A stretch of 64,000 nucleotides of DNA from Rhodosorus marinus CCMP1338. Taxonomy: Eukaryota > Plantae > Rhodophyta. The notes under the pieces were generated by a model that was given only the letters and a program-made list of their open reading frames with translations, made no database searches and was not told where the DNA came from. Position 1 is the first letter of the stretch; every line of letters starts with the position of its first letter. Shown here one piece after another: positions 510-57,759 of the stretch. The stretch lies in the NCBI GenBank assembly GCA_029953675.1, contig JAMWBK010000003.1, forward strand, positions 2,480,001-2,544,000, written 5' to 3'. Both the position numbers and the translations under genes were made by a program.

Positions 510-968
510 TTAGTTCACAGTCAAACTTCGCTCCTTCCTCTTGTCTGCCTTCATGGCTTCAACTCTCTGCTCTGAGCGCCTGTGGGAACGCTTATGGCAA
601 GATAAGCTCGACCTCCACTTGAACCGTCTCGAGCAGCCCGGGAACGGACATTCATACGGGTCATCTCCAGAGTGAAAACGGATGTGATCCTTCAAATACG
701 ATTCTTTTAGAAAGCTTTTCGTACATCCCTCCTTCGGGCAGACAAATCTTTTCCGCCTGGGTACCAACAGGGTCTCCTTTGAAACGGAAGGAGGACCCCC
801 ACTCTCGCTAAGTCTCTCCACGGCAAAATCACAGAGAAACGAAATATCCATCTTCGATGCCTGTTTCCTTGAGGCAACCACGGCCATGTATTGCCGTTCC
901 TCCTCTAGCAACGGCGACGAGGCCATACCCTGCGCTTCCTGCTTCGCGCTAACCAATACCGACATCAT
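510..968 (-). CDS. C2H2 zinc-finger protein (2 fingers), intronless; first ATG at 968 (the ORF track starts at TTG 1061)
   Basis: FVCPKEGCTKSFLKESYLKDHIRFH-SGDDPY-ECPFPGCSRRFKWRSSLSCHKRSH: two C-x4-C-x12-H-x3-H fingers with a TGEKP-like linker. Confidence 0.9.
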   Translation of the reverse strand: MMSVLVSAKQEAQGMASSPLLEEERQYMAVVASRKQASKMDISFLCDFAVERLSESGGPPSVSKETLLVPRRKRFVCPKEGCTKSFLKESYLKDHIRFHSGDDPYECPFPGCSRRFKWRSSLSCHKRSHRRSEQRVEAMKADKRKERSLTVN

Positions 969-2399
969 TCCTTCACAACCCGAATCTCCCCGCTTCCTCC
1001 CTACTACCCCTTCCTCAGTCAACCTCTCCTCCAACACCTCCCCGCCATCCCCCGCCCACAAGCCTCTGGATAATCCTGCTTAATAGAGAAACTGGCAAAA
1101 ACAGTTACGCTGTACAAAACACATTAATTCATTGTCCCTTTTGTCACGACTGAACCTCGGTTACAACCAAATCACTCCAGCAAATTATTAACCGGAGAGA
1201 AGTCGTCCCGGCGATTTGAGCACGAGCAAGCTGTATGAGTGTATCACTAATTTTTCTTCCCTCATTCTGTACCTACGCCAACACTGCAAACAGTTGGGCC
1301 GCGTGATTTCCGGGCCCCCCTCAAACTATAAAATAATAAAGAAAAATCCAAGAAGCCAGCCAATGACGCCTCAGAGAACTTGTCTTACAATTGAAATACG
1401 AGGAAGAAAGATCTAGTACTGAAATTTTGGTATTTTCTGTGGTTTGATTGATTGGTTTGCGCACGTACACAACCCCCCCTTCCTTCGTTAAGGGGATGTA
1501 CGACAAATATTAAATAATAGTCATATTATATATATATTTCTTTTCTATTTTATTCTGAAGCGTGGAAATTGTTGTTTTAGAAATCCCTTCAAAAATATGG
1601 ATTGAGATTTTTAGACGCAACAGTTGAGACGTCATCCTATCGAACAGGATCACACAAGTTTTGGTTTAAGCAAAACTTATGCTCCAGTCAGCCCCGTGGA
1701 AGGGGGTTTGTATCAGTACAGGTGGAATGCGGGGGTTGGGTAGAAAATTTTCTCTCCAGCACATCATGACGACGACCACTTACTATATCCACTTGAATTC
1801 CGCTCAAATGTAAAGGGTCAAAAATTGTTCCAAAAACTGAAGACGACAGAGGTGTCCGGGTCAAGAATCCCCTGTTTGTACAAAAAAAAACAACTCATCA
1901 CGGTATATTTTCACGGGCGAATAGGCTCTTCCCGCATCGATAAAAAATAGCTAAATAACAGAAAAAAGTTCCCCTACTCCAGAAACTACCATCGTCTTTC
2001 TCAACGGGGTAGTTGCTGCCGCAGCCCCTCTTGCTTTCTGCTTTTTCGGCTCGGTTACCCCCTCTATCCATTTTGGGATTTCAACCGGATTATCGGGTAA
2101 ATCACTCACCCTGCGAATCTCATTGAAACTTAAAAAACACTTTCAAAAAACAGAATACTGTGCTGTCCGAGCGCAGACCTCTAGCACACGTACAATTCTT
2201 GAAACTCCTCAGATGTACGTTGCGAGAAAGTCCGCAACATTCGAGAAAAATTCCCCCCCCAAAATTCCCGTGGAACATGTGTTTCAATTACCTTAATGGA
2301 GAAAAAAAGTCCGAAGAAACGGGCTAGATTGGGGCCATCCCCCCCCCTGACAAGAAAATACAAGTTACTAGGCCTATAGGCTTGTGCCGTTAACCTACA

Positions 2400-3900: not shown

Positions 3901-6356
3901 TACTCTCCCAAATACATAAATCAGTCAATGAAACCATATCTATCAATCATTACCCTCCACCCCCCCCTTCTTCTCGTGAAGGGAAGTGTACTGGAGGTTA
4001 GCTCCGCTAGCTCCACTAACCAATGATGCATGCGTTGGTCCAATTATCACGCAATATTTTTGAATTGTGTCCAATAGAACTATCGTACGCGGATGCATAC
4101 GTGAGGGTTTATCTCCTTAGAATGTGGGCATTACGCCCAAGCCGACTAGGAAGACTTCCTTGGTTCATGATTTGGTGGGAATACGAGAGAAAAAAAGTAA
4201 TCTGTGAAGGGTCCGCCGGAAGAGGCAGAAGACTCCATACAGCGTCGAATGTACAGACCGGTGGACGCTCTATCTGAGAGTGCTCGAAAACACGCGTGGG
4301 GGGGGGGGGATGTACGCAATTCTCTACCGTTCGGTTTTTTCTACCCAATATCAAAAAGACATTTGAATATAACATGAGGTTTTTCAGTCAACCACAACTG
4401 GTGTCCACCGTCTTTTTGAGACTTTTTCAGATGCGATTAAAAAGCAGAAGAAAAAAGTTCTCTTTTTCCTGACCTGCAGAGAGGAGCTTTAGGAGGTTTG
4501 GTAGTACGTGAGAAGGGGGAAGGTGATGGTGTGTGGAAGCCATATGATTTGATGGCTTTTTTTAGTGTGTCGATTAATTAATTGAAAGGGGAAAAGATTG
4601 GTTTTCAACTCATGACTTGCGTCGTCGGCATGCAATAGGTTTTCACTGTTTTGGAAGTTCACTAAAAATAATTGGGAGAATGTACTGATAGATATACGAT
4701 TATTTTTTCGCTGATCGATAGTGCATCACGTCATTTCTCCCCACTCGTCGCGGGAGCTTAGTTTAGCCACTCCAGCAAAAACGCTTTGCCTAGTGATAAT
4801 CTCCGTGCAATAGTCCCGCCACCGCTCCCCTCCCGCTCTTCCTCATCCTCTTTGTTTCATTTATATTTTCGTCTTATTTTCGTATTATGGCCTACTTCAA
4901 CCGGAGCCTCGAGCCGTCGTTTCTATTTCTTGGAAGGCCAACCAGCCCTGTTGATACTCTGTTAGGAGGAACAACCTTAATCTATACCAGCATTATAAAT
5001 GGAGGAAATTCCGGTCCCTCATTCCTTAAGAGAAGCGAGCGGGTTCTTACCCACCAGCTCTTCGATCGGAAAAACATTAAAAGAAAAAGACGCAATTATA
5101 TGCTTCCCCAATTCGTCCCATAGAAAGATGGTCTTGGAATTCTTATTTTTGTTCAGGTTTGATTTCCAGCAGGGATACGCGGTAACACTGCTTTTTCTCA
5201 AAAACATTTAAACGAACCGTTTGGCGCCGTCGACGTTGGTGGTACTTGGGAGAAAATTTTGGACATATCCCTAAATTTTAGTAGCTGGAAGCTTTGAAAT
5301 TTATATTTGTTTCCAGGTACAGCGGGAGTGGAAAACAGCAGAAACCTGTTGCGTCCTTACTGAACTGCTCCGAAATCCCGACTTCACACGGAGGTTTTAC
5401 TAAGCTGCTCTCACTCCCGACTGGTACGACCGCGCTATTCTGGCTTCAAACGTTTCGTACAGATCGGTTGAATCGGAGGCTTAGCTCCATGAACGAGTTA
5501 CGTAGGAAGGGCACAGAGAGCGCGCCGCCACCCCAAATCTGGCGGTCAAATCTGGCGGTCAAATCCGGCAGCTAATCCCCCAAAATCCAGATCCTCCTTT
5601 TTGGGTTTTGTTTCGTTGGTACAGTTTTTACATTCGGCTGCAGTTCAGTGTGTCACGGCACCCGTTTACTGAACACCGGGTGCGGGCCTTCAGTAAGTTC
5701 TCGTGTTTCTCCTTTTGTATCCTCGTTCGTGACCTTATTCCTAGTGGTGTTAGCCGGTGCTTTACTGGACGTTGAGTTGGTCACACTATACATTTTGGAA
5801 TAAGCAGACATTTGGGATGGAAGGCGAGCATAGTGTCCACAGTTGCTTTTCGGCGTTCACGCTATTCTGGACACTGCGGGAAAAGCCTATTTTTCTGGAA
5901 ATGGCCCTTCCTAGATGTGCCCTCCTTCGAAACTGCGTACTGCGTTTGAGCGGTGGGTATTGAATGCCACTGAATAGAACAAGACACAGAACGCACCTGC
6001 CTCGAATGGCGAGACAGGAAAAGCGAAAAGCCCTAAACCTTGGCTGTCTTGGAGAGGGGAGAGCGACTTTCCCCATGTGCATTGGCCTGAGCGCAACTAA
6101 GGCCATGTTGGCTTTCAGGTTGTTCAGCCTCGCGTGGATATCCACAGGTTCCTCTCAAGCGTGAAAATCTTACGATAAGAATGGAATTCGCGTGGTGTAT
6201 AGGAGGAGGTCTGACTTTTCGTCGTCATATTGCGAAACACAAACTGCAACCAACTCAGTAGTATATTTGACCAACGGAAAAGGATGCGACACTAAGCACA
6301 AAACAAGTGCCGGATCAGATCTGAAGAAGCCTCGATCAGCGTCAACTCCGTGTCTC

Positions 6357-7140
6357 AATCAGTGTTTCAATCAGTGTTTCGATTTTGAGCTTAGTGAACT
6401 CAAAAGGCTAGCCGCGCAGTGAAGTTGAAGCCCAGCATTGGTTCAGTTCCCAAAACACTGGAGAGCGCGAGTCTGTATAGAACAGCGAACTCGAAACCTC
6501 AAATACGTGAAGGGTCCGTAGGGAGAACAGGAGACTGCGTACAACGTCCTACGCTACAAAGCCGCCAAGCGTTGATCATTGTTTCGACCTAGTGTTTCAA
6601 TCAGTGTTTTAATCAGTGTTTCAATCAGTGTTTCAATCAGTGTTTCAATCAGTGTTTCAATCAGTGTTTCAATCAGTGTTTCAATCAGTGTTTCAATCAG
6701 TGTTTCAATCAGTGTTTCAATCAGTGTTTCAATCAGTGTTTTAATCAGTGTTTCAATCAGTGTTTCAATCAGTGTTTTAATCAGTGTTTCAATCAGTGTT
6801 TCAATCAGTGTTTCAATCAGTGTTCATTCAGTGTTCAATCAGTGTTTCGATTTTGAGTTTGTAGAATTATTGGTTACTGAACTGTACTCAGATGCTAGCC
6901 GTGCAATGTAGATGAAGCCCAGCCTTGGTTCAGTTCCCAAGACACTGAACGGTGTCCGGGGCACTCAAGAGTCCTCCGGTTGCGTTCTTTGTCCGGTCTC
7001 TGGATGTCTCGTTTTGATCGTGAGTACAGGTGGAGTGCATAAGTCTGTATAGAACCGCGAACCTGAAACCTCATATACGTAAAAGGTCCATAGGGCGAAC
7101 AGGAGACTGCATACAATGTCCAATGTCCTACGCAACAAGC
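6357..7140 (+). repeat. Diverged direct duplication of a retroelement segment (about 6380-6570 vs about 6848-7140)
   Basis: Shared blocks: cgattttgag; gaagcccagc(a/c)ttggttcagttcccaa(a/g)acactg; gtctgtatagaac; gaacaggagactgc(g/a)tacaa. Confidence 0.85.
6591..6849 (+). repeat. 12-bp minisatellite (AGTGTTTCAATC)n, about 22 copies
   Basis: 19 consecutive 12-mers at 6591-6818 (a few TTTTAATC variants), then two 11-nt variants and a partial unit. Two to three more units lie at about 6357-6380. Confidence 0.97.
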
Positions 7141-8999
7141 CCTCCCTGCTCTATGCGGAGATTGCCGCTGACGCTCTGAGAAGACTCCCTGCGGGTTCCG
7201 GTAAGACAGGAAGACAGCAAGCGTGAATCTCCAGAGAGCAATTTGTGGGGTTGGAAAAGGGCGTTGGGCAGGACCAAATCTGTTTCGACGTACACCAGCA
7301 CTTCGAATTCCCTCAAATCGTTTTTTCTCTTGAATGAGGTTGCTGCCAAGGACAAAAGAAAATGACGACAGTTATTTCAGGTGCTAGGAGCTCAATGCCT
7401 GCTAAGGCCTAGCACGTACTGCTGCATGTATCCATTGCGTTCCCGCACGAGGTTGCAAGGAACTAAGCGGAGGATGGGCTTGCCTAGACAGGAAACTGGT
7501 GTCCAAGCCGCACGTTTCGAGGCTGCAAAACATATGAAATCAACAAGGAAAAACGGCCAAGATCCAGATCTTGTATTCCAGTAGCCCACCTCCAGGTTCG
7601 TCAGCGTGGACGAGGACAAAAAGAAATCCAAGGAAGCCAGGTGCTAACACGGAGGGTGCCCCTGAATACTCGGGAACTACGGCAGGGGGACACAAGCCAA
7701 GTACGCTCTTCAAGATCTTTTGTACGGGTTCCCGACGTCTGTTGAATCAAGCCCCTCGCAACGAACAGGGACCTCTTCAAAAAAAAACAAAAACCAACGC
7801 GTACGCTCCGGTGTGCCCTCATTTCTTTATCCCCATCCTTTTTCTGGCGAGACCGTGAATTCTATCTGGCTAGGCCGGAATGGCTTCGTAAGCGATTCTT
7901 TCAGTGGGTCTGAAGCGGCGTTGCGGTACCGCTGATTTGGCATGAACTGCGTAGTAGGGAATAGGGCTAGCATTTGCGGCTGTGCGTGTGAGTTGATGCG
8001 AGCGAAGCGGGCTGATAATCCCGAAATCGAAACTGCGCGTCCGTGTGTCCTGGGTGGATCGTCTGGGTTCCTCTGTTGTAGTGGCTCGGTCTCATTCATG
8101 GTGCTCAGTTCCTGGAGTGCGTTTGTGGTTGACAGTGAAGTTATCGACGGCTTCGAAGCCTTAGTATTCAATTAGCCGGGCTACAGCCCTCATGAGTTCA
8201 TAGTAGCGATCTTTCGTAGCCGAGTAGAACGGGGAGAGCGAACAGCGGGGTCGGGTGGCGCTCGAAGCACTTGGCGGATACCGGCCATGGCATTGGTCAG
8301 GAAACTAGAGAAAGTCACTCCTGTTAAGCAACGAGCAAAAAGCGAGGGATCCTTCTCAACGGGCCAAAAAAAAGAGGCAGGAACAGGCGGTCACAGGAGA
8401 GAGCGTCTCGTACTTCTAGGCGTATGCCAGGAGAAGTCCGCTTCAAGCAGCAGAAGCACAACACGCAATGGAAGTTGGAGGAGTGTCGGGTGCTCTTATA
8501 TTTCACTGGAGACCTCTACAAGAGGTAAACAGCCCGAGAGTCTTGACAAGCCACCAGGAGTTTGGTATGGACATCCATATCCGGAACTTGATTGATGTAA
8601 CAAATATATAATATACAATATACGTTGATTGAGTTGTGGACACCTTTTTACCATATATATATTGTTTGCGATAAAAATAAATACCATACAGCAACGAGTG
8701 CGTAACCCCGGGTTTAGAGCATCAGGGTGGTTTGGCAACTTTCAAATGGTTGCCGGAGAACCACACAATGTAAGGGAGGTTGAGGCCCTGCCACGAGTTG
8801 AGATCCTAGGGGAGCAATTTATTAGCTACTCTGAGTTGATATCATCCATGAAGATTACAACTTTGTTCATAATCACACCACCACCTCCTCCCTCTTCCCC
8901 TTATGCTTTCAGAAGGCGTCGCGACTAGAAGCAGCACCAGGGTCGATAATTCTGCATGCCAACGGATCGCATTCGTCCCCAAGGAGGCTCCGATACCGC

Positions 9000-13189: not shown

Positions 13190-14071
13190 TCAAGTGCCCT
13201 CAAATACATCAATGGTATACTTCAGAGCATCTGACATGTCTTCTTGATCTTCCATTTGCCAACTCGAATCCACAGACGGCAGCGGTGTAATGCTTAGTGA
13301 CCGGTCCCCAAGCGACAGCGGAGCCTTCGCGTGCATCTCGACATCTAGAGGACCTCCCAAATCGTTAGCCAAGGAATGCTCAAGCTGCATGGAGAAGAGC
13401 TTCTCTCCAGTTGCCCTCTCAGAATCTCTCACTCCGTTCATCTCCTCAGTGAAGCGATTATACGAGTTCATCTTGCCACTACTGGCCTTGCTAGCTTCCA
13501 CCGTCGGTACATCGAAAGACTCGGAAAAAGACAGACTCGATTCCCGCGTAATCACGCTCATCGGCGGGCCACTGATCGGCGACGTTGTGATATCTTGTTG
13601 TCTTGCGATAGGGTGGGTCATCGTGTTCTTCAAAGTGCAGGGAAGCAATGGTTTCAGATCCAAGGTCCGCAAGTTCGGTGTACTCTGAGTCTGTCTCCTC
13701 GGCTCATTCAATGACGTTTCGGCCGGGTTGGGGTTATGATATCGCAAGTGGTTGATCAGCGAAGATCTCCACTTGAATTTCAAACTGCATCCTTCAAAGC
13801 TACACTCAAAGGGTGTCTCACCCGTGTGACTGCGCTGATGAATCTTCAAATTGTATCGCTTTTTAAACTGCTTATGGCAATCAGAGCACTCATATGTCTT
13901 CGGGCTCTTCGCCTCCGGCTTCACTATACCCAAATCCCCTCGCACTTTCTTAGTCGGGGTGGTAACCTTCTCCGCTTCCCCGATGGAACTCATCGCTAAT
14001 GCATTATTCTCCTCCTTCCCCACAAACAGATCATTCACAGCCGCCTCAAAAACTGACGCTTCCACCTTCAT
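13190..14071 (-). CDS. C2H2 zinc-finger protein (2 fingers), intronless; first ATG at 14071 (the ORF track starts at GTG 14089)
   Basis: YECSDCHKQFKKRYNLKIHQRSH-TGETPF-ECSFEGCSLKFKWRSSLINHLRYH within a 299-codon ORF. Confidence 0.92.
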   Translation of the reverse strand: MKVEASVFEAAVNDLFVGKEENNALAMSSIGEAEKVTTPTKKVRGDLGIVKPEAKSPKTYECSDCHKQFKKRYNLKIHQRSHTGETPFECSFEGCSLKFKWRSSLINHLRYHNPNPAETSLNEPRRQTQSTPNLRTLDLKPLLPCTLKNTMTHPIARQQDITTSPISGPPMSVITRESSLSFSESFDVPTVEASKASSGKMNSYNRFTEEMNGVRDSERATGEKLFSMQLEHSLANDLGGPLDVEMHAKAPLSLGDRSLSITPLPSVDSSWQMEDQEDMSDALKYTIDVFEGT

Positions 14072-15399
14072 GTCAAAAAGTTTGTTCACCTAATTCATTC
14101 CCATCGTCAACCCGCCAACTCTCCCACAAAAACAACAACAACAATACACAGCACTAAGTCCGTTATATCTCACCTTACAACTTACGATCATCAGCTCTTT
14201 TTATCCAAACTCCAACAACGCCGGGATAGATTCCTGCTCCTCGCGCACCTTACCTTGTGAGCAACGTGAGCTTGCTTACCAAAAAAAGTATTAGTACCAC
14301 TCTGCCACGGTTCACAGTATCCAAAATTTCCCCTTTTGGAACCAACCAAAAGGACATGAGAAAGAAAAAATATAGGAGAAAGATTTGAGGGGGGGGCGAG
14401 GAGGGGGGGGGTGGGGTGGTCTGAGAGAGGCTTTATCCATTATCGGTGATGGGGGTTGGGGGTTCTAAAAAGTAACCATCATCTAAAACCCCATCAGCAA
14501 CCGTTTATTCAGAGCCTAACTACCCTCAGACGCAGCCAGTAAATCGTCATTCGTAACCTCCTAAGGTGTATATTTACTGCACAAGAAAAATAACGATTTC
14601 ACACGTGCCGTCATCAATCAATCTAAACGAACCCCCAAACTCCATTTGATCCAAAACTCTACCCCCTCCTCTTTTTTTTTATAAGGGGACTCCCATCTAT
14701 TCACCACATCGAAACCCACCGGGAAAGAGGAAGGGGGTAGGGGTGACCGAATACATATTTGTTGGAACGGACGCCCTACAAGGGAGCGCGTAGTGAGGCC
14801 CTTCCGCGCTGGAGAAACCCTGACTTTGGCTAAATCATCTCCACGATTCCGGAGGCAGATAGAAACTCAAGGGGGATGATATTAGACTTGCTTCTTTGGC
14901 AAAATACTTACATAGTTCAACGGAACCCCCTTCTTGGAAGATTGAAGAATGGCATTCTTTCCGGTCTTGTTCTTACCCGGAACCAACCCCCCCCTCCCCC
15001 GGGGTAGAAAGAGCCCCACGATTCAACAATGCCAAGACTGAAAATTGAGCATTGAGAAGTTTCTTCAATAGTCATATGAAACTACCATTAATTTTCACTA
15101 CATTTTGCTGAAGCCCAAGTGTCCCGTAGCAAGGATGGCAAAAGAAGGGCAAAAGAAACAGTATAGCGTGGTCGCCGGAAAAGAAGGAGGATTCTATAGC
15201 AATATATGCAATCGCCCCTGAGGTTATAAACCCACCCACCCGTGGCCATGAATGTTTTTTTTTTTTTGCTCCTCAAAAAACCAGAGGTATATGGAGCAGA
15301 AAGCTGAAAAAAACAACAAAGTAGGGTACAAGCGAAATGGTCCTTAGCTTCCTTTTTTTTTTCGGCAGATCGTCTCTACAAAAAACTGAAAACTTCAAA

Positions 15400-30885: not shown

Positions 30886-31145
30886 GTTCTAGAGGAAATA
30901 CACATATTCGTCGGAGGCGGGATGTATAGGTTCTAGAGGAAGTTCACATATCTTTCGGAGGCGGAATGGCAAGGATGTTCACAGCGGCAAATTAGTTAAG
31001 CGAGCATTGGATAGAAGTGGCTGGTTGGGTTGAGAATTGGTGCAGGCGGAGAACAGGTGTTGAGAGTTCGAAGATCATATACAAGCTGGAGGTCCTACGC
31101 TTTGATCAGCCGGAGTTCGGGTGGTCGTGGGAAGATTTTGATGAT

Positions 31146-31793
31146 ATGAGTGATATCTATACGTTTGACAGCAGTGATGATGGAGCAAATGCCGTGCAGG
31201 AACCGGTCTCGAGAATAATCGCGGAATACCCGGATGACATGGTCCCAGCGGAGAAGCAGAGCACGCGCCAGTCCGCTGGCATGAAGCAGGAGCAATCAGC
31301 CGTAGACTACAATGATCTACTGCTTCAAGCACTGCAATGCCCGATGCCGGACCAAGAGATTGAGGCTGCGTACGCATCGGCTTTGACCCCGATGACGCCC
31401 TCAAGTACACGACTGGGGGATCTTCCTCAACTGACGGATGCAAAGAAGACCCAACGCAAGGAGGGTAATGTTCCTGCTGCGGGCCCGAAGAGCTTCTTGG
31501 GCCTGGACGATGGCGCTGGTTCTTTTTCGGCAACATCTGATGACAACAACGTTGCGTCGCCGGTGGAAACTGCCAATTCCCTGGAACGGGGGGGGGTGAA
31601 CAAGAAGGAAAGAGTTTGTCACATCTGCGGATATGAATTCATGTGGCCGAACAGGTTGCGTCTCCATATGAGGAAGCACACAAACGAGAAGCCGCTGAGA
31701 TGTCGGAATACTGGTTGCAACTATAGGGCAAAGTGGAACTCCGGAATGGCATATCATCTAAAGAGTCACTGCAAGATGGCTCCGAAGAAGTGA
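31146..31793 (+). CDS. C2H2 zinc-finger protein (2 C-terminal fingers), intronless; likely ATG at 31146 (the ORF track starts at GTG 31017)
   Basis: VCHICGYEFMWPNRLRLHMRKH-TNEKPL-RCRNTGCNYRAKWNSGMAYHLKSH. Confidence 0.9.
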   Translation: MSDIYTFDSSDDGANAVQEPVSRIIAEYPDDMVPAEKQSTRQSAGMKQEQSAVDYNDLLLQALQCPMPDQEIEAAYASALTPMTPSSTRLGDLPQLTDAKKTQRKEGNVPAAGPKSFLGLDDGAGSFSATSDDNNVASPVETANSLERGGVNKKERVCHICGYEFMWPNRLRLHMRKHTNEKPLRCRNTGCNYRAKWNSGMAYHLKSHCKMAPKK

Positions 31794-43512: not shown

Positions 43513-44550
43513 ATGCTTAAAGAGAATTTGGTAAGCTTGATTGGAAAGCATTAGTGGCCATTGGCCCAACAGGATACTGACGTTTGCTACATGACCGACT
43601 TACGCTGAATGTGGGTATTTCGTTCGTATTTTGCTTGGTTCGAAAGATTCAATCACTTCCCGCTTTGTTTGGGACTCAAAAGGCGAAGTCACTCGTTGAT
43701 TCAGAAGAGGCTCTGATCGCGGTTGTCTCGCACTCGCTGGAGAAAAAGGTTGCTACCAATGATACGGTAAGCAGAATTTTCTGTGGAAATTTGGATGTAA
43801 TTTTCGAAGACATTTAGGCCCACGAGTTTAATATCTATTTCGCCTTTGCTTCCGCAGGCCGATACGACTTCGGCGAGAACAACGATCTTCCACTCCGTGG
43901 CACCTCCTTCAATGTCGATTGCGGACTATGCACGGCGAATTGGTCGACATACTCCATGCTCGAAAGTTTGTTTTCTCGGGGCACTGCTGCTCCTAGAACG
44001 ACTCTGCGCCATTCACCCAAGCATGAAGCTGAACTCTCTCAATGCGCATAGAATGTTCCTGGCTGCGGTGACGGTCTCGGCCAAATTTTTTGACGATGAA
44101 GTTTGCAAGAACTCAGTTCTAGCTTTCATTGGAGGAGTACCTAGATCAGAACTCAACGCGCTGGAGATCACATTCCTCGCGCTTCTTCAACATCGACTTT
44201 TCGTTGTTAACGAAACCCTCGAAGACTTTGAGAGCAGTTTGATTACTGCGGTTATGGCAGGCAGAGACGACAAATCTTTCCAAGTTCAAAGAACTCTCTT
44301 GCGCTGCGGATGCGTGAAGCCGTATTCACTCTATGGCGATCGCCGAGGAAACGAGTTTTGCACGGAGAAGGATTCAGTCTATGTTCCCTCGGCGGGGGAC
44401 AAGAGTAAAACGCAGGCCCTACTTGATCCTATCGGCGAGGATCGCCCAGGGAGGCAACGGTCCACTAAATGTGTGGAGAGGAGAAGTCCCCAAGACAAAT
44501 TTTTGACCCAGAGGAGGGCTTTGGTCTCGCTGCAGTATGATCACAACTGA
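43513..44550 (+). CDS. P/U-type (PHO80-like) cyclin, about 276 aa; proposed exons 43513-43530, 43647-43766, 43858-44550
   Basis: FHSVAPPSMSIADYARRI..CFLGALLLLERL..LNSLNAHRMFLAAVTVSAKFFDD..IGGVPRSELNALEITFL. GTAAGC donors keep the frame. The 18-nt first exon is less certain. Confidence 0.92.
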
Positions 44551-45715
44551 TAAATCTGCACGGCGACTTAAAGGGGGTAACCCGAAGTGAAGTGTTTTCG
44601 TTGTAGAAGCCGTTCAAAATTGGCCTGGTGAAAGCTCGAGGCAGAAGGGAATGGGCTTGCATACCAAAAGAGACAATATTGTAGTTAATAGTCCTGAAAA
44701 TCAAAAAAAGTCAAGAACAGCAAAAGCTCTTGCTACGTGCGATAACAATGCTCTTCCTCGCGCACTATCGAACGCCGTCTACTGGGGGCCCCGCCTCTGA
44801 TGCCCTCGATACGTTGTGCCGGAGAAGAAACTATTGGCGGGCACTGCCGAGGCAGCGAGCAGTTCGTGCTCCTCCGAATCAACACGCACATAATTTATTC
44901 AGAGCCTCCGTCTCCTTTCATTCCTCTGAAAGGCGCTTTCTCCTAAAAAAAAAGAAAAAGAGAAGAAGAAGAAGAAGAGAACAGGACAGCGCTCCTGATT
45001 ACCAGAGGGTGATTGCTGTACATATCCAGTTCGCGAACAGCAAGAACCCTTGCCAATAAAGAATCACCAAAACCCTTCCGCATTGCCTGAGGGCAATTTA
45101 AATCCTGAATAAAACAAGAGAATATGCTTTTAAAAAAGGAGCATACCCTCCAAAAAAACTATTTTTGTAATATGAGTGACCAATAATACTGAAAATCGGG
45201 TTACGAAAATTCCGTATAAGCAAATCATTGGCCACAATATATAGTTTTCGATTAAGAAATCCGTTCATTTCGACTTTTGTCCGTTGAGAGCAAAAAGGTA
45301 TCTGATTTTCCCGGAAAAAACTCGTTTTGATGAATTTTGGGGAAATCTGCTGATTGTTCGTTATCTACGTGAAAAAGTATCATGCGGGGTAGAGCTGAGA
45401 TTTTCTCTTGGCCCGGCTAATTGTATTGAAATCGATGTAGTTTTTCTCTCAGGTTAAGGAAGTCGTTTTTGGAGCTCAGAGAGAAGTGCATCAGTAGGTT
45501 TGAGGAGGTTAGGGTGGGGGACGGGGGGGGAGGGAAGAGGAGGGTTTGACATAGGTTATGGGTGTGGAGGGAGCCTTTGCAATCGAAATCGAGGACAACT
45601 AGGGCCTTAATTGGCATCAGTTCTACTTTGTGCTGTTTTGTTGGAGAGGCTGAGGAGGTTTTGTTTTGAAGGGTTCTGCTGTTCTGTGTTGGAGTTATTG
45701 GGGAGGGGGGGGGGG

Positions 45716-47500
45716 ATGACCTTGTCCGTGGAAGAGCGGTTCGAAAACTCATGGAGTTTAGCCGACGATATTTTTCATGACAGGCTGAGGAAGGAGGCGG
45801 CTGCGGAGAAGCCGATAACTCTCCGGAATCCTTTCCTTTTTTGTACGTGCTTCCTCCGCGGCACCGTGCCCATCTCTTCACGTTGATTAAATATCCTCGT
45901 GGGAATGATGTTTGTGACATAGATGAGGGGCATCTCCCGAGTTTCGTCTTCACTCGTGCAGTGAAGGCTCTGAACGTTGAGTCGTTCAACCCCGATTACG
46001 ATTACATGTTCCAGAGGGGTATAGATCCGGACGTGGACGATCCTACCAAATGCCATGATCATCCAGAGACTCCAGCGCAGTGGCCAGAGCGAAGTCGAGT
46101 TGTGGAGTACAGAAACAGAGTTAGAGAGGTCCTCAGAGATAGTAAGTCACAGAAAACTTTAAAAGTCAGCTCAGCGTCAGTTGCTGATGATTGGGTCTAA
46201 CATGATAAAACGCAGGCGATCGAATGCACCAGCTGGATAGCATGGGCATGGCCGACATGTCCATTGAACATGATCTAATGCATATTGAGACGTTGCTCTA
46301 CATGGTGTTACAACTCGACAAAAGGTTCAAGCGCTGGTCCAGGGGTGAAGTGGACACTGCAAAATCATTGCTTCGAGGGATCCTGAGAGATGACTTGCCC
46401 GACCATGTTCGGATACCGAAAGGTACTGCCAAGTTAGGAAGAAGTCCGGAAACGAAGAAACAGCAATGGGGATGGGACAACGAATTCGGGGAATTGGAAG
46501 TGCAGGTGAATTCGTTTGAGGTAATGTTACCAATGCTCATTGGCACACTGTGTTTCAAGTCTCAGGCAGCGAAGGCTAACTATAGAGGATCCGGCACCGT
46601 CTCTGTGTCGGATTTTTACAGGCTTCTACCTTGCCAGTTACCGTCGGAGAATACGTTGAGTTCATGCGAGCCGGTGGATACCAGCGAGAGTCGCTTTGGC
46701 AGGAAGCAGATTGGAAATGGCGTATGAGGGAAAGCATTTCACATCCGAAGTGCTTAGTCCCTACGAATGAATCCACAGAAGAATGGGAATACTTAACGAT
46801 TCATTGTACTATGAGCATGGAGGTACGCTAACGTGTCAAAGGCTGGTCCTTCTTCTTGGTGTTCCGACTTGGTCGCTGAAGTGTTAGTTTGCAGGAAGCG
46901 AGGGATCTTCCAATTTTCGTCAGCCTCGGGGAGGCTCGTGCCTATGCAGCCTGGAAAGGAAAGAGGTACTGTAAACAATCGGTCAGGAAACGTGCGAGCG
47001 AATTAGGGAAATTTGTTTCTTAGTAGAATTCAATCACTGAATCGTATTTGCTGAGATCTCGATTGAAACGATGCGCGCTCAGGCTGCCTACTGAAGCTGA
47101 GTGGCACAGGATGGCGTTCGCTCGGCCCGGGGATGCGGAGGAGACCAGCTACCCGTGGGGAAATGAGAAACCAGTCCCGGGCGTTCATGGAAACTTTGGC
47201 TTCAAGTACTGGATTGCAGTTGGCGTAGGTCGCTTTCCAAGCGGAAAAAGCGCATTTGGGATCCTCGACTTGTTTGGAAACGGGTGGGAATTGACCGACA
47301 CTCCGTTTGAGCCGTTCCCTGGGTTTGAAGTGGACCCGGACTACCCGGGTTATTCTTCAGACTTTTTCGAGGGCAAGCACTATGTGCTTAAAGGAGGCTC
47401 GTGGGCTACAGAAACTCAACTGATAAGGAAGACGTTTCGAAATTGGTATCAGCGGAACTATCCGTACGTGTTCTCCAAATTCCGGCTCGTGAGCTCCTAG
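45716..47500 (+). CDS. egtB: EgtB/Egt1-like non-heme iron sulfoxide synthase (DinB-like plus FGE-sulfatase domains), about 446 aa; exons 45716-45842, 45923-46141, 46216-46520, 46622-46822, 46895-46965, 47083-47500
   Basis: Five GT-AG introns give one continuous 1341-nt frame. Motifs: LRNPFLFYEGHLP; RGIDPDVDDP; EHDLMHIE (H-x3-H-x-E iron motif); RLPTEAEW; NGWELT; VLKGGSW; FRNWYQRNYPY. Confidence 0.9.
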
Positions 47501-48030
47501 CGTCCTTCGACTTTTCGACTCGTGATAGAAAGCAAACAATGCTCAAACGTCCTCGTAAGGATGATCAGGGCCTTGCATGTCCCTGAGCCATATTCAGCCG
47601 CAACCTAAAAAAGGTTGAGTTTCCCACGTAGGTAGCGGAACTTCGTTACAGTTGGCTTTTCTTTAGGGTCAAGCAACGCTTCCGCGCTTGGCTTATCTCA
47701 ACCTAGAACATTAAACCATTGCCCACCCTTCTGCTTCCCGTCGGGGCAGCATACCGTGCGTTCTTTAGAAATTGTGTTTGGACATCAGAGAGAGCCAACC
47801 ATTACTAAATCTCAATGGATGTTGTGCTGAATCGCCGAACGGGCGTCTTCGTCTTCACATCGTGTGTCCGTCAGCGCGTCCGCGTAGAACCTGTCGCACT
47901 GTTGCCGTACAGTATCGCAACACCATGCTCATGTTTCCAAAGGGCAGTCGCAAAACAAACAGGTTACAACAATCCACCGTGGCTTCAAACTCTTCTCGGA
48001 TAACAGCGACCGCATATAGGACGAATGAGT

Positions 48031-49825
48031 CTACCCGAGAAGCATCCCTCTATTGCTGCTCATCATATGGGTGAGGTCTTGAAGCTGAACGTCGGGGTTG
48101 TCCTTCCGGCTAAACCATGGGTCTCTGTGGTAAAGTAACAAGCGTCTGAGTCAGCACCCAGAAAGAAGAGTTTTGGTACCATATCTGTCAAGGAGACTCT
48201 TACGCCAACAAATTATCCGCCGATGGACGTTCGGACGGATTAACCGCAAGCATTCGTTTGACTATTGACTTCGTCTGCTCGGAAATAGTGCCCCATTCCT
48301 TGTCTGGGAAGACGGGCCCCCGCATGACTCGATGAAGAAACTCATCGTGCTGATTGCCGTAGAACGGAAACTTTCCAGATAAGGTTATGTACAAGATCAC
48401 GCCACAGGACCAAATATCCACGGCTGGCCCGTACGGGCGACTGTTGTGCACTTCTGGAGCAGCATAGTACTTGGTTCCAACGTATGATACCAGTACGTTC
48501 CGATCTTGACTGTCGTTGGGTTCCGCAAAGTTTGCTAGACCGAAATCCGTAAGTTTGATCTGTAAAAAAGCACAAAGCAGAGAAGTCAGATATTCTGGCC
48601 TTTAGCTCTCATATTCACCAGGTAGAGACGTAACTGCAACATCCTTAGTACCTTCAGTGGCCACTCCTTGTTACAGCACAAAACATTCTCTGGCTTAATA
48701 TCTCGATGTACGATGCCCTGCTTGTGTAAATAAGCGACGCCCTCCAGCATGCTCTTCATCAGTTCAGCCGCTCGTTGTTCCGAAAAATGATTCTCGCTCG
48801 CAATCCTGTCGAAAAGTTCTCCGCCGCTGACATACTCTTGCACAAAGTAGATTTTTTGAGTGTCCTCAAAAACGTCATGAGTTTTGATGATGTTTGGATG
48901 CGCAATCGACTTCAGAATCTTAACCTCGCGAATGATGTATTCCCGTTCCTTCTTGCTCGCGCCTTTCCTCACAACCTTGGCACATTTCCCAACACAGGTG
49001 CACAGAATGAGCGATATGAGAACCAAACTCGCGCCAACCGTTTTCCTTACCGGCCAGCGCATGGGAGGACCTCGCTGGAGAACACAGCTTCAATAGCACT
49101 GTACGCACGTACCTTTATCGCAACGTCGGAGTCCGTCTGCTTGTTTCGGCCAAGAAAGACCTTCCCATAAGCCCCCTGTCCTATGAGCTTGCCGGTTGTG
49201 TAAAACACTTCGATATGTCGCGCTGAGGCTCTTTTCAGAGCTTTCTCCCAGTGACGGAAATCCTCCTAAGGATAGCAAGAACCGAAGCATTATCAGCGCA
49301 TGCTCAAACAAACTTCACCTAAACATTTTTTCCACTTCATCACTTGTTCGATTTTCTACAATTGCGGATCTCTACCAAATCTAAGCCTCTATCAAAGCTA
49401 GTTCACGTTCAAGCCCAGAAAAAACTCCTGTTCAAAAGTACACGCTCTCGATTGAAGTGGACTTCATCTATTGTGCCGATGCCCCAATTCTAACCTTACA
49501 TATTTCTAAGTGCGGAACACCGACAAAGTCCACAAGGGCTTACCTTAGACTGTGCTTTAAACACTAGGTTCTTCTCAGCTTGTTTCAACTCGAACTTCAG
49601 GTCCTTTTCCCAGCATTCAACCGGACATCCCCAGATGTTCATTTCCCACTTGATATCACCTTTCTCTTCGTTGCGCATTGTTAAAACGGTGTCATTCAAT
49701 TCTAGGTACCGTTTCTGAGGTATCCGCAGAAGTCCATCCTTCGTCACCCATCCCCACATAACCTTCTCTTTCTTATCAGCGGCCGCATTCTTTGCAGATT
49801 TTTTTCCTTTCCTGGAATCCTCCAT
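48031..49825 (-). CDS. CAMK-group Ser/Thr kinase with an N-terminal PH domain, about 402 aa; exons 49825-49544, 49265-49113, 48975-48652, 48559-48204, 48124-48031
   Basis: PH-like WGWVTKDG..QKRYLEL..WEKAL; kinase motifs GQGAYGKV, VAIK, HRDIKPEN, DFG, GTKYYAAPE, DIWSCGV, RPSA. All splice phases are consistent. Confidence 0.93.
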
Positions 49826-55465: not shown

Positions 55466-57759
55466 ATGGAGGAGGGCGGAGAAGCTCTGAGCGGTACTGA
55501 GCTTGTTCAGGTGATTTCTCATGATGGAGAGTTTCGGAAGGCAGAGCTGGAGAGGCTGCTGGGGAGCAGGGCGATGCTGTTGAATGGAGATACAGAGTAC
55601 AATGTTGTGTCTATTGTTGGTCCTCAAAGTAGTGGCAAGTCTACTGTTTTGAATGAAGGATTTGCTACGAATTTTGTCACTATGGACGCTACGGAAGGGA
55701 GGTGGGTTAAGCCAAAAGATCGAGCTGCTTCGTGGAATCCAGGCATGAATGTGGAGTGCTCATGATTCGGAATTTGAAACTGAATAGTGCGGGTTTTTCG
55801 CTCAGTCCAGATATCAGGTATGGTAGGCGCGAAAGACGCCTCGCAAGCCTCGGCGAAGACAAGTGTCGAATCGACAGAAATAGCAGCAAGATTCGTGGCC
55901 TCTTACTAAACTTTTTCTTCCGGTTGTGTTGCTGAAATGTCGTCCTTTTTCAACTTTCACAGGTCACTCAAGGCGTTTGGTCATCTGTAGTCAATGTTGA
56001 TGATAGAAAGCTGATGTTGTTCGACGTTGAAGGCTGCGATAGCTCGGAAAGAGGAGTGGAAGGATTTGTCGTTGAAAAAAAGCTTGCATTGTTCGCACTT
56101 GTTCTCTCGGATGTACTTATCATTAATTTGTGGAGTAACGACGTCGGCCGACGCACTGCATCGAACATGACGCTGCTTCGCAGCATTGTCCAGTTGCAGT
56201 ATGAACTGTTTGATTCGGACCAGGAGTTTCGAAAGCACCCGGTGAGAATCCTGTTCCTGCTGCGTGACTACGACGGACAAACACCTCAGCGCAAAGTTGA
56301 AGAGAGCTTGCAGGCTCAGCTTGTACATGTGTTTGACGGGGTTGCGAAAGAATCGTTGGATACGGACACCCGAAACGGACACGCTACAAGTCTGAGCGAC
56401 CTTGTTGAGCCGGGATTCGTTTACCTCCCACACAAAACTTTTTGCCCGGCAGAGTTCACGGCAACGGCAAGAAACCTGCGGAACTTCCTGCCGCTTCCTG
56501 ATTTCTACAGCAGGGGGATTTCCTCGAGGGACCTACCATACTTTGCGAGCGGCATCTGGAATACGATTAGGACGGATGAGAAGTTGAACCTCCCCAGCCA
56601 GAGGGAGCAGCTAGCGGTGTACAGGTGCGGACGGGCCGCGGATAACATCCGCGCTGATGGCCTTGAGGCGCTATCGAGCCTCTCGTCCGAGTTTGCTAGA
56701 GGAGAATTCAAGAACCCTTCGGTGTTCGATGCTGTTTCTGGCCTCGTGGATGAAGCTGTCTTGGAGTTCAGCTCGGAGCTCTACGGCTACGACGACGATG
56801 TTGTGGAGAACAAGGCAGGGGAATTGCTGTCCGAGCTCAGAGCCGCAGGTGCGCAGACGTTCAGAATAGGAGTAAACGAGGCGAAGACGGCGTCCTTGAG
56901 TAAGTTAAATGTAAACCTGACCAACCGGACAAGGTTGGTTGACGCCTGGCAGAATTTTGCCAGGGATGCGTCGGATATTCGAACTGAGGAAAGCAACAAA
57001 TTGCGAGCGTCAGTATCACTTGCGGGGTGCGGGACGTACGCTTCATGGCAATGCATCCTTGACGAGGAACTAGACAGGTACGATGACGAGGCTGACGTAG
57101 CCCTTGTCGTTGCTCGAGAACGAATACTCAGATCCGCCAAGGCGTACTTGGAAAAGAGGATGTTGAGTTCCGTCGAGCCTCCTCTTGAAGCGCTCATTAA
57201 CGCCGGGGAACTTGATTTATGGGAGAATGCAACAGATCTATGCAGAAGAGAGTGGGAAGTTGTTGGACCTCTTGTTGAGGACGCGCTTGTTAATATTGGC
57301 ATTGAGGAGGTCGACGACCAATTGCGCCTTATACGTGAACGGTTGAGGCTCGCGATAATTGAAAGGATCCGGTCGATGATTGGTTCAAGTGGCGTGTTCT
57401 TCCACAGGCTCATTGTCACCCTGAGGGAAGATTTACCAGAAAACTGGGCCACCAAGTCCAACTACGCAGTAATTGTAGCAGACGCTCGTACTAGAGCATT
57501 TGAGAAGCTCCTGCTGTTCGCCGTTGTCCGAATCGGAAACTTGGACGGTGGCATCCAGGCACCTGTTGAACACTTCACGGAATCCGAGCGTGAGGATCTT
57601 CTGCACGACCTTGAACGAGTAGAAACCGGACTCATTCGAAACGCCCGAGCGGAGCAGTACCAACGCAACGTACGGATCACCGAAGTCGTCGTCTCGACCG
57701 TGACCGTTCTCGGCATGGCCGTCGCCACCGCTGCCTTGGGATCCAGCCGCAGAGCTTGA
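55466..57759 (+). CDS. SEY1: Sey1/RHD3-type atlastin-like GTPase, about 679 aa; exons 55466-55701, 55811-55817 (micro-exon), 55963-57759
   Basis: G1 GPQSSGKS; G2 region GRYQVTQGVW; G3 DVEG; VLIINLW..DVGR; FLLRD; NLPSQREQLAVYRC; C-terminal hydrophobic helix. Confidence 0.9.

Follow-up and report, generated by a model that had tools for sequence, protein, structure and literature searches.

Fungal Egt1, characterized in N. crassa and S. pombe, is a type III sulfoxide synthase in which EgtD and EgtB moieties are fused; bacterial sulfoxide synthases typically stand alone. Among the algae, green-lineage proteins present the Egt1 arrangement, brown-algal and diatom proteins present an OvoA-like arrangement, and Chondrus crispus, Porphyridium, Cyanidioschyzon merolae and Galdieria sulphuraria encode red-algal 'SUMF-like' proteins that combine DinB_2 and FGE-sulfatase domains without the PF10017 methyltransferase domain (Ho 2015, PMC4659905). 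A possible role of these SUMF-like proteins in ergothioneine synthesis was raised in the same 2015 work (PMC4659905). Here we analyze a gene with the same two-domain architecture, likewise devoid of a methyltransferase domain, from the red alga Rhodosorus marinus CCMP1338. The gene lies at positions 45716-47500 (+) of a stretch of 64,000 nucleotides from contig JAMWBK010000003.1 (positions 2,480,001 to 2,544,000), which we refer to as the window and to which all coordinates below apply. Its 446-aa product belongs to the nonheme-iron sulfoxide/selenoxide synthase (NHISS) family, and from its fold, its active-site signature and the linkage of homologous genes to EgtD we predict that it is probably a stand-alone, cysteine-dependent hercynine C2 sulfoxide synthase of ergothioneine biosynthesis.

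Membership of the NHISS family is established by the domain hits, the order of scores against the Protein Data Bank (PDB) and the full-length superposition of a structural model. The sole Pfam domain above threshold in the Rhodosorus protein was FGE-sulfatase (aa 176-444, E=3e-41), with DinB_2 remaining sub-threshold in this protein and being detected in its homologs, and the EgtB-related C-terminal signature TIGR04373 was also matched. Among the NCBIfam models, ovoA_Nterm (TIGR04344) scored best, at 248 bits for a cutoff of 400, followed by SenA (206 of 420 bits) and EgtB (TIGR03440; 200.6 of 360 bits). When the single sequence was compared with PDB entries, the highest scores corresponded to the EgtB-IV enzymes of Crocosphaera subtropica (8VIH, 186 bits) and Geminocystis (8VIG, 167 bits), followed by OvoA of Hydrogenimonas thermophila (8KHQ, 142 bits), M. 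thermoresistibile EgtB (MthEgtB, 130 bits) and OvsA (121 bits), with type II EgtB and SenA at roughly 70-76 bits and formylglycine-generating enzymes (FGEs) at 22-42 bits. A 32-sequence family profile left this order unchanged (425, 404, 325, 281 and 238 bits), with type II EgtB at 212 bits and SenA at 172 bits.

The AlphaFold2 model, built on the same 32-sequence alignment, presented an N-terminal helical bundle and a C-terminal FGE-like domain in one polypeptide, with a predicted local distance difference test score (pLDDT) of 94 and a predicted template-modeling score (pTM) of 0.93. In Foldseek comparisons it could be superposed over its full length on EgtB-IV (template-modeling, or TM, score 0.82-0.84), MthEgtB (0.82) and OvoA (0.80), and all full-length structural matches were sulfoxide or selenoxide synthases, whereas true FGEs fitted the C-terminal half only (TM ~0.40). 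In EgtB-family enzymes the iron is held by three histidines, and the Glu of the H-x3-H-x-E motif is a conserved signature residue that does not act as a ligand. Residues H46, H134 and H138 of the Rhodosorus protein, together with E140, aligned with the ligand histidine region of 8VIH, 8KHQ and 4X8B, the three histidines matching the ligands; H134 and E140 were invariant in the 32-sequence alignment and H46 and H138 were conserved in at least 90% of the sequences. An initial annotation of this locus, made from the DNA sequence alone, had assigned the gene to the EgtB/Egt1/OvoA family of sulfoxide synthases, an assignment that the Pfam, NCBIfam, PDB-sequence and structural matches bear out. It had also presented H-x3-H-x-E as the iron motif; the motif is present, as H134-x3-H138-x-E140, but its Glu has to be removed from the ligand set, which established EgtB structures place at H46, H134 and H138.

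Fifteen active-site signature positions were mapped by alignment to PDB sequences, and at these positions the Rhodosorus protein reads RNYHDVHMHYYNWYY (R37, N38, Y43, H46, D77, V80, H134, M137, H138, Y395, Y398, N428, W429, Y430 and Y434). Composite motifs for NHISS enzymes have been published for EgtB-I (xSDH--RRHQHYYNWDR), EgtB-II (xSHHYYRRHQHxYNFFx), EgtB-IV (RxYH--DxHxHYxNWFx) and SenA/OvsA (xNEH--HRHxHY...), and histidine acceptors have been noted to carry Ala at the site of the bulky aromatic residue of hercynine acceptors (Kayrouz et al., bioRxiv 10.1101/2024.04.10.588772). The Rhodosorus protein fits each specified position of the EgtB-IV composite motif except for a Phe to Tyr change at 430, and an exact match hence fails. 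At the mapped positions EgtB-IV, which accepts hercynine and cysteine, reads RNYHDNHIHY[NY]NWFF, sharing the R, Y, H, D, H, H, Y, N and W positions with Rhodosorus and differing at 80, 137, 430 and 434 (N/I/F/F versus V/M/Y/Y), and the histidine-accepting OvoA reads RHYHDSHIHYFYAFF. The hercynine-type pair N428-W429 is present in Rhodosorus, with Y398 at +3 after the catalytic Tyr, in contrast with OvoA, which has F, Y/F and A at the three sites (F/Y/A in the H. thermophila enzyme). SenA/OvsA was also considered as a type and rejected, since the protein reads R-N-Y-H...D in place of xNEH--HRHxHY and stays far below the SenA cutoff.

The residues expected to contact the sulfur donor are equally recognizable. 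In OvoA_Th2, L-cysteine is hydrogen-bonded by R62 and Y68 and the catalytic tyrosine is Y406 (PMC10696552); in our alignment these residues correspond to R37, Y43 and Y395 of Rhodosorus, and Y395 aligned with the catalytic tyrosine (Y377 in MthEgtB) in all the sequences compared. The RxxR pair (R87/R90) that characterizes the gamma-Glu-Cys-dependent type I enzymes is replaced by D77...V80, and the absence of this motif fits cysteine as sulfur donor. Judged on these residues, the Rhodosorus protein sides with the OvoA-like enzymes of the family (R/Y/H/D), but with the hercynine-type N-W.

The comparison with relatives revealed how widely this signature is distributed. In a database clustered at 90% identity, the best matches after Rhodosorus itself numbered in the thousands and were stand-alone proteins of ~440-455 aa sharing 43-48% identity with the query; the majority came from metagenomes or metagenome-assembled genomes (MAGs) of Methylomirabilota, Chloroflexota and 'Deltaproteobacteria'. 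Bacterial stand-alone EgtB homologs from Methylomirabilota/Rokubacteria, Binatia, Acidobacteriota, Chloroflexota and other groups (38-48% identity) resemble the Rhodosorus protein in length, architecture and signature, and differ from it in being intron-less, in being mostly linked to egtD in operons or divergons, and in carrying mostly Phe at 430 and a variable residue at 80. Eukaryotic relatives in the same database included a protein from the MMETSP transcriptomes (P0008, 48%) and a 510-aa protein of Porphyridium purpureum (KAA8497643.1, P0063, 44%), the latter annotated as 'Ergothioneine biosynthesis protein 1'. The Porphyridium ortholog aligns over 92% of the query, presents the signature RHYHDVHMHYYNWYY, which differs at one variable position, and, like the Rhodosorus gene, stands alone in an ordinary eukaryotic gene neighborhood; unlike it, it has an N-terminal extension of ~50 aa, internal insertions and one intron instead of five.

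An exhaustive search of representatives at 50% identity uncovered many multi-domain relatives scoring in the range of the stand-alone proteins, and a PF10017-type histidine methyltransferase domain was found fused in 51 of the relatives fetched. Pfam scans and domain mapping defined EgtD-synthase fusions of ~790 aa (P0132 and P0134, 44-46% identity), fusions in the reverse order (P0140 of Plasmodiophora brassicae, 802 aa, and P0151), triple fusions of aminotransferase, synthase and EgtD on metagenome contigs (P0136, 1271 aa, and P0157, 1160 aa) and an aminotransferase-synthase protein of Rhizamoeba saxonica (P0147, 877 aa). A protein of Flabellula baltica (P0145, 1076 aa) was also observed among fusion-form relatives at 40-44% identity, the range of P0136, P0157, P0147 and P0140, and the aminotransferase domain of the fusion forms is of class I/II. 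If this domain were the C-S lyase, the triple fusions would hold the entire aerobic ergothioneine pathway on one polypeptide. Classical Egt1-type fusions were recovered from early-diverging fungi (Allomyces, Blastocladiella, Catenaria and chytrids) and from a green alga, Neomeris, with identities of 36-41% and scores of 195-228 bits. The signature R-x-YHD-x-HMHYYNW[YF]Y, with minor changes at 38 and 80, was found in each of the 20 proteins sampled from the bacterial clade with the EgtD-adjacent homologs P0016 and P0062, and it also occurs in the EgtD-synthase, synthase-EgtD and aminotransferase-synthase-EgtD fusions and, with W or occasionally F at 429, in the fungal and green-algal Egt1-type clade, several members of which (e.g. 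P0261, P0255 and P0197) match RNYHDVHMHYYNWYY letter for letter.

A phylogeny, which the initial annotation had suggested, was inferred by neighbor-joining with Kimura distances on 146 sulfoxide-synthase domains (434 columns, 200 bootstraps). The whole set was separated from MthEgtB (0.97), and the red-algal proteins fell outside both a tight clade of OvoA and EgtB-IV (1.00) and a clade of 27 fungal and green-algal Egt1 fusions (0.94). The bacterial clade with P0016 and P0062 was well supported (0.99), and the Rhodosorus protein grouped weakly (0.52) with the MMETSP eukaryote, two metagenome proteins and Porphyridium. Deep branching had a backbone support of 0.00-0.20, with support restricted to shallow clades, and given this unresolved backbone we claim neither a sister group among fungal Egt1, other eukaryotes or bacteria nor a direction of transfer. 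The label of 'fungal-Egt1-type' used in the initial annotation hence holds for the active-site signature and fails for architecture and clade: fungal Egt1-type proteins share R-x-YHD-x-HMHYYNWYY, the lack of the type I RxxR and the sub-threshold NCBIfam pattern with Rhodosorus, but they carry an N-terminal EgtD domain where the Rhodosorus ORF starts directly at the DinB-like domain, they form a clade of their own in the tree, which does not resolve a sister relation to fungi, and the nearest relatives, at 44-48% identity, are stand-alone proteins from red algae, other eukaryotes and bacteria. Its accompanying statement that the protein is nearer to fungal Egt1 than to mycobacterial EgtB was upheld, with Allomyces, Blastocladiella and chytrid proteins at 195-213 bits and 36-41% identity, against the 130 bits of M. 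thermoresistibile EgtB. Among the stand-alone relatives, a group with an N-F-Y signature lies nearest to the red-algal proteins; its member P0135 shares a 5.5-kb contig (L005, Logan SRR23274229) with a gene for a bZIP-domain protein, suggesting that the group, too, is eukaryotic.

Most of the bacterial homologs are encoded close to EgtD. When bacteria and archaea were scanned with a single genome for each species, 80 loci were recovered with homologs 38-46% identical to the Rhodosorus protein, and an EgtD-like gene was present in 69 of the 80, lying within 500 bp in 67. On two long contigs (L001 and L002) coding for 47%-identical homologs (P0016 and P0062), a PF10017 EgtD gene was divergently adjacent. 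At a distance of 0.8-1.3 kb from the egtD/egtB pairs of these contigs (L001 3831-6159 and L002 3333-5583), an ABC_tran gene and a gene fusing OpuAC and BPD_transp_1 were also observed; they specify a betaine-type ABC transporter reminiscent of ergothioneine-specific uptake systems, and L001 carries in addition a gamma-glutamyltranspeptidase gene. The remaining 11 of the 80 loci, without EgtD in reach, belong to MAGs of Binatia, Rokubacteria and delta-proteobacteria that are related to one another. They include L007, L008, L010, L012, L014, L017, L018, L022 and L068, in each of which the synthase occupies positions ~6001-7310; the flanking sequence is long enough for a judgment in nine of the 11, and conserved LysR, GcvT-like and Rieske neighbors are present in seven of these nine. 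In L068, a LysR regulator lies directly upstream, and the locus also encodes a GcvT-like aminomethyltransferase, a small Rieske ferredoxin, HAD and NUDIX hydrolases and a transglutaminase-like protein. The EgtD-adjacent homologs read mostly N-W-F, and all 11 EgtD-less ones read N-W-Y with Val80, as in Rhodosorus. We do not read the N-W-Y versus N-W-F change as a functional difference, because N-W-Y also occurs in the EgtD-fused P0140 and P0136 and in most fungal-type proteins.

Around the red-algal genes themselves no such linkage was detected. No EgtD was found in the window by tblastn with two bacterial EgtDs and ~45 EgtD domains of fusion proteins, the only match with E<0.1 being sulfoxide-synthase sequence carried along in one query range, and the 1.1 kb between the gene and the upstream cyclin gene held no methyltransferase-like ORF. 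The in-frame TAA located 108 nt upstream of the ATG and the transcripts described below, which start at the same Met and reveal no upstream methyltransferase exons, agree, together with the tblastn result, with the earlier proposal that no methyltransferase is encoded upstream of the gene or elsewhere in the window. Likewise, no methyltransferase or aminotransferase was found within 10 kb of the Porphyridium ortholog.

The predicted reaction can be outlined as follows. The N-terminal DinB-like helical bundle would hold Fe(II) through H46, H134 and H138; R37, Y43 and D77 would bind L-cysteine, and Y398, N428 and W429 would assist in binding hercynine (N-alpha-trimethylhistidine). The reaction would use O2, with Y395 in the place of the catalytic tyrosine, and would join the cysteine sulfur to C2 of the imidazole to give hercynyl-cysteine sulfoxide. 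Formation of this C-S bond would commit the substrates to aerobic ergothioneine synthesis. Two further enzymes, each presumably encoded by a gene of its own outside the window, would complete the route: an EgtD-type methyltransferase providing hercynine and a pyridoxal phosphate-dependent C-S lyase cleaving the sulfoxide. Such a split pathway, suggested in the initial annotation, is a reasonable prediction. The protein is likely cytosolic, as its N-terminus aligns with the starts of the bacterial proteins, without extension. An active ergothioneine pathway in red algae is supported by the literature: Galdieria sp. NS3 contains 35-39 mg of ergothioneine per 100 g dry weight, autotrophic growth included (PMC10815428), and a small amount has been reported for Porphyridium purpureum, as cited in PMC4659905. 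No literature link between Rhodosorus and ergothioneine was found.

Several observations weigh against this functional prediction and define the alternatives. To our knowledge, no enzyme from the red-algal clade or from the closest bacterial clade has been assayed, and the substrates and regiochemistry proposed here for Rhodosorus are drawn from residues and gene linkage. The protein reaches none of the ovoA_Nterm, SenA and EgtB equivalog cutoffs, its signature positions rely on our own alignment-based mapping, made without the authors' table, and the bacterial homologs with the signature closest to it are precisely the 11 without an adjacent EgtD. Neither an EgtD-type methyltransferase nor a C-S lyase is encoded in the 64 kb around the gene, and searches with a profile of nine fusion EgtD domains and with P0294, one stand-alone EgtD of eukaryotic derivation, returned no red-algal EgtD among the best 120 matches, all of them bacterial or metagenomic, a comparison that gives no verdict on Rhodosorus either way. 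Furthermore, OvoA-like enzymes switch regiochemistry with the substrate and show cysteine dioxygenase side activity (PMC10696552). The substrate-dependence of OvoA, together with the R-x-Y-H and D positions shared with it, the rank of ovoA_Nterm as best NCBIfam model and the absence of a nearby EgtD, which would leave unmethylated histidine as a conceivable substrate, could be taken to indicate an OvoA-type 5-histidylcysteine sulfoxide synthase of ovothiol biosynthesis, attacking C5 with histidine and cysteine as substrates, whose C-terminal N-pi methyltransferase domain was lost or never present. OvoA does share with Rhodosorus the fold and the cysteine- and iron-binding residues, but it continues into a C-terminal methyltransferase domain where the Rhodosorus protein ends at the FGE-like domain. 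The best ovoA_Nterm score is far below its cutoff, and we do not regard it as evidence for OvoA function because the same ovoA_Nterm-best, sub-threshold pattern is given by EgtD-fused and EgtD-adjacent proteins (Egt1-type, Plasmodiophora and EgtD-adjacent bacterial proteins) as well as by the Porphyridium protein. With Y398, N428 and W429 matching hercynine users, and with the red-algal proteins left out of the fully supported clade of OvoA and EgtB-IV, an OvoA-type activity appears quite improbable. EgtB-IV, a group of stand-alone cysteine- and hercynine-dependent C2 sulfoxide synthases, provides the closest solved structures, with an identity of only ~28% in the structural alignment, and clusters with OvoA, apart from the red-algal proteins.

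The lack of an EgtD in the window and among the best 120 matches, the cysteine dioxygenase side activities of the family and the association of the bacterial homologs of most similar signature with LysR, GcvT-like and Rieske genes rather than EgtD would also suit an orphan or repurposed synthase, in an alga that has no histidine betaine synthase and imports hercynine, or one that works as a dioxygenase of thiols (cysteine) or accepts a different imidazole or chalcogen compound, for instance selenocysteine in making a selenoneine precursor. We consider this unlikely: what was or was not listed among the best 120 matches does not amount to a negative result, the SenA/OvsA signature is absent, red algae grown autotrophically contain ergothioneine (PMC10815428), and all the residues for binding hercynine and cysteine, along with the catalytic Tyr, are retained in R. 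marinus strains, Porphyridium and their relatives, a conservation of the full set that argues for the canonical reaction. In a related minority view, to which we assign a slim chance and which we keep mainly because the 11 EgtD-less loci share N-W-Y and Val80 with Rhodosorus, red algae may carry a C-S bond-forming enzyme without any EgtD-family gene, obtaining hercynine from a non-homologous histidine betaine synthase or from associated bacteria, or the red-algal clade and the EgtD-unlinked bacterial N-W-Y subgroup may use another substrate, leading to an undescribed thio- or seleno-imidazole. Lastly, the UniProt name of the protein ('Sulfatase-modifying factor enzyme-like domain-containing protein') might suggest an FGE or a SUMF-like sulfatase maturase, a notion favored by FGE-sulfatase being the only Pfam domain above threshold and by the sulfated polysaccharides of red algae, in the context of which the family has been discussed (PMC4659905). 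The fold and domain evidence rules this function out and leaves it a minimal probability, given the low scores and half-length fit of FGE structures, the N-terminal DinB-like domain with its three-His site, the match to TIGR04373 and the restriction of full-length structural matches to sulfoxide and selenoxide synthases.

As a stand-alone hercynine C2 sulfoxide synthase, the Rhodosorus enzyme would be an ordinary find that adds to the methyltransferase-free red-algal synthases already described. The novelty implied by the initial annotation did not hold up, as DinB_2 and FGE-sulfatase proteins without a methyltransferase were reported from red algae in 2015 (PMC4659905) and stand-alone synthases are, as said, usual in bacteria; something new would emerge only if red algae proved to lack EgtD altogether. 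The analysis nevertheless provides a functional name for a gene deposited as "hypothetical protein", and it adds Rhodosorus, a unicellular red alga of stylonematophyte grade, to the red algae with a methyltransferase-free ergothioneine-type synthase, in keeping with the ergothioneine reports. We know of no biochemical characterization of any protein in the SUMF-like group. The Egt1 active-site signature is moreover not confined to fungi, being found in very many stand-alone bacterial enzymes and in eukaryotic proteins of varied domain arrangement, and this wide distribution should be useful for annotating algal and protist genomes and for choosing enzymes for ergothioneine production.

Translation of the three forward frames over 44500-48500 defined the six exons of the gene, whose splicing yields a 1341-nt ORF encoding 446 aa and a stop, with all five introns bounded by GT..AG. 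Exon 1 (45716..45842, +), with the ATG at 45716, encodes aa 1-42 and the first base of codon 43, comprising the start of the DinB-like helical domain and R37 (codon 45824-45826), the role of which is taken from PMC10696552. Intron 1 (45843..45922, 80 nt, phase 1) interrupts the Y43 codon at a junction backed by transcript ORFs P0128 and P0131, and is followed by exon 2 (45923..46141; aa 43-115), which contains Y43, the predicted iron ligand H46 (45931-45933) and the GIDPD loop with D77 (46024-46026). Past intron 2 (46142..46215, 74 nt), exon 3 (46216..46520; aa 116-217) encodes H134-x3-H138-x-E140 (46269-46289) and the beginning of the FGE-sulfatase-like domain, matched by Pfam from aa 176. 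This domain continues, beyond intron 3 (46521..46621, 101 nt, phase 0), through exon 4 (46622..46822; aa 218-284) and, beyond intron 4 (46823..46894, 72 nt, phase 0), through exon 5 (46895..46965; aa 285-307 and two bases). Intron 5 (46966..47082, 117 nt) precedes exon 6 (47083..47500; aa 308-446 and a TAG stop at 47498-47500), which carries Y395 at the catalytic-Tyr position (47342-47344), Y398 and the hercynine-type motif N428-W429-Y430 (47441-47449), interpreted following bioRxiv 10.1101/2024.04.10.588772. The G+C content is 51% in the coding sequence, 46% in the introns and 48% in the window.

The product is identical, residue for residue, to KAJ8907006.1, a hypothetical protein (NDN08_003489) of R. 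marinus (entry P0122), and ORFs obtained from transcripts of other R. marinus strains (MMETSP/UniRef) align to it at 89% identity with zero internal gaps over the five exon junctions. One of these ORFs (P0128) is also 446 aa long and starts with MTLSVEERF, and another (P0131) spans 415 aa. The gene is hence nuclear, spliced as modeled and expressed in related R. marinus strains. On its origin and structure the initial annotation proved accurate: the six-exon gene of about 446 aa with its MTLSVEERF start is supported by splicing, by KAJ8907006.1 and by the transcript ORFs; the segments it quoted (PITLRNPFLFYEGHLP, FQRGIDPDVDDPTKCHDHPETPAQWP and FRNWYQRNYPY) were all found in the translation, as was the H-x3-H-x-E motif; the probable alga is indeed one; and the settled nuclear status of the gene follows from transcript-confirmed introns, eukaryotic neighbors and the 3.35-Mb length of contig JAMWBK010000003.1 (assembly GCA_029953675.1). 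Bacterial contamination was considered and excluded on the introns, the transcripts and the eukaryotic neighbor genes. In Porphyridium (L004 10001-11703), the single 170-nt intron falls after aa 55, equivalent to ~aa 32 of the Rhodosorus protein and thus at none of the five Rhodosorus positions, indicating that the introns of the two genes are lineage-specific gains or losses; shared introns were accordingly discarded as a sign of gene age.

According to the public annotation, the gene is flanked upstream by a cyclin gene (~43513-44550) and downstream by a protein kinase gene (~48031-49825, -), and further eukaryotic genes in the neighborhood encode a PHD-finger protein, TAFII55 and a Sey1/RHD3 GTPase. 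Directly before the start codon, 16 of 17 bases are G (45699-45715), a second G-rich stretch is found ~180 nt upstream (45510-45540), and a purine-rich A/G tract, aaaaaaaaagaaaaagagaagaagaagaagaagag, occupies intergenic positions 44935-44980, ~750 nt upstream. These G-rich stretches and the A/G tract may be low-complexity elements of the promoter or the 5' untranslated region. Scans of the window for tRNAs and Rfam families gave no match. An uninterrupted 581-aa ORF at 56014-57759 (+) corresponds to most of the Sey1/RHD3-type endoplasmic reticulum-fusion GTPase, the gene start of which is placed ~550 nt further upstream in the public annotation. In addition, C2H2-type zinc-finger matches were detected in three long ORFs, at 510-1061 (-), 13190-14089 (-) and 31017-31793 (+), and their scattered location suggests a dispersed zinc-finger gene family in the region of the window.

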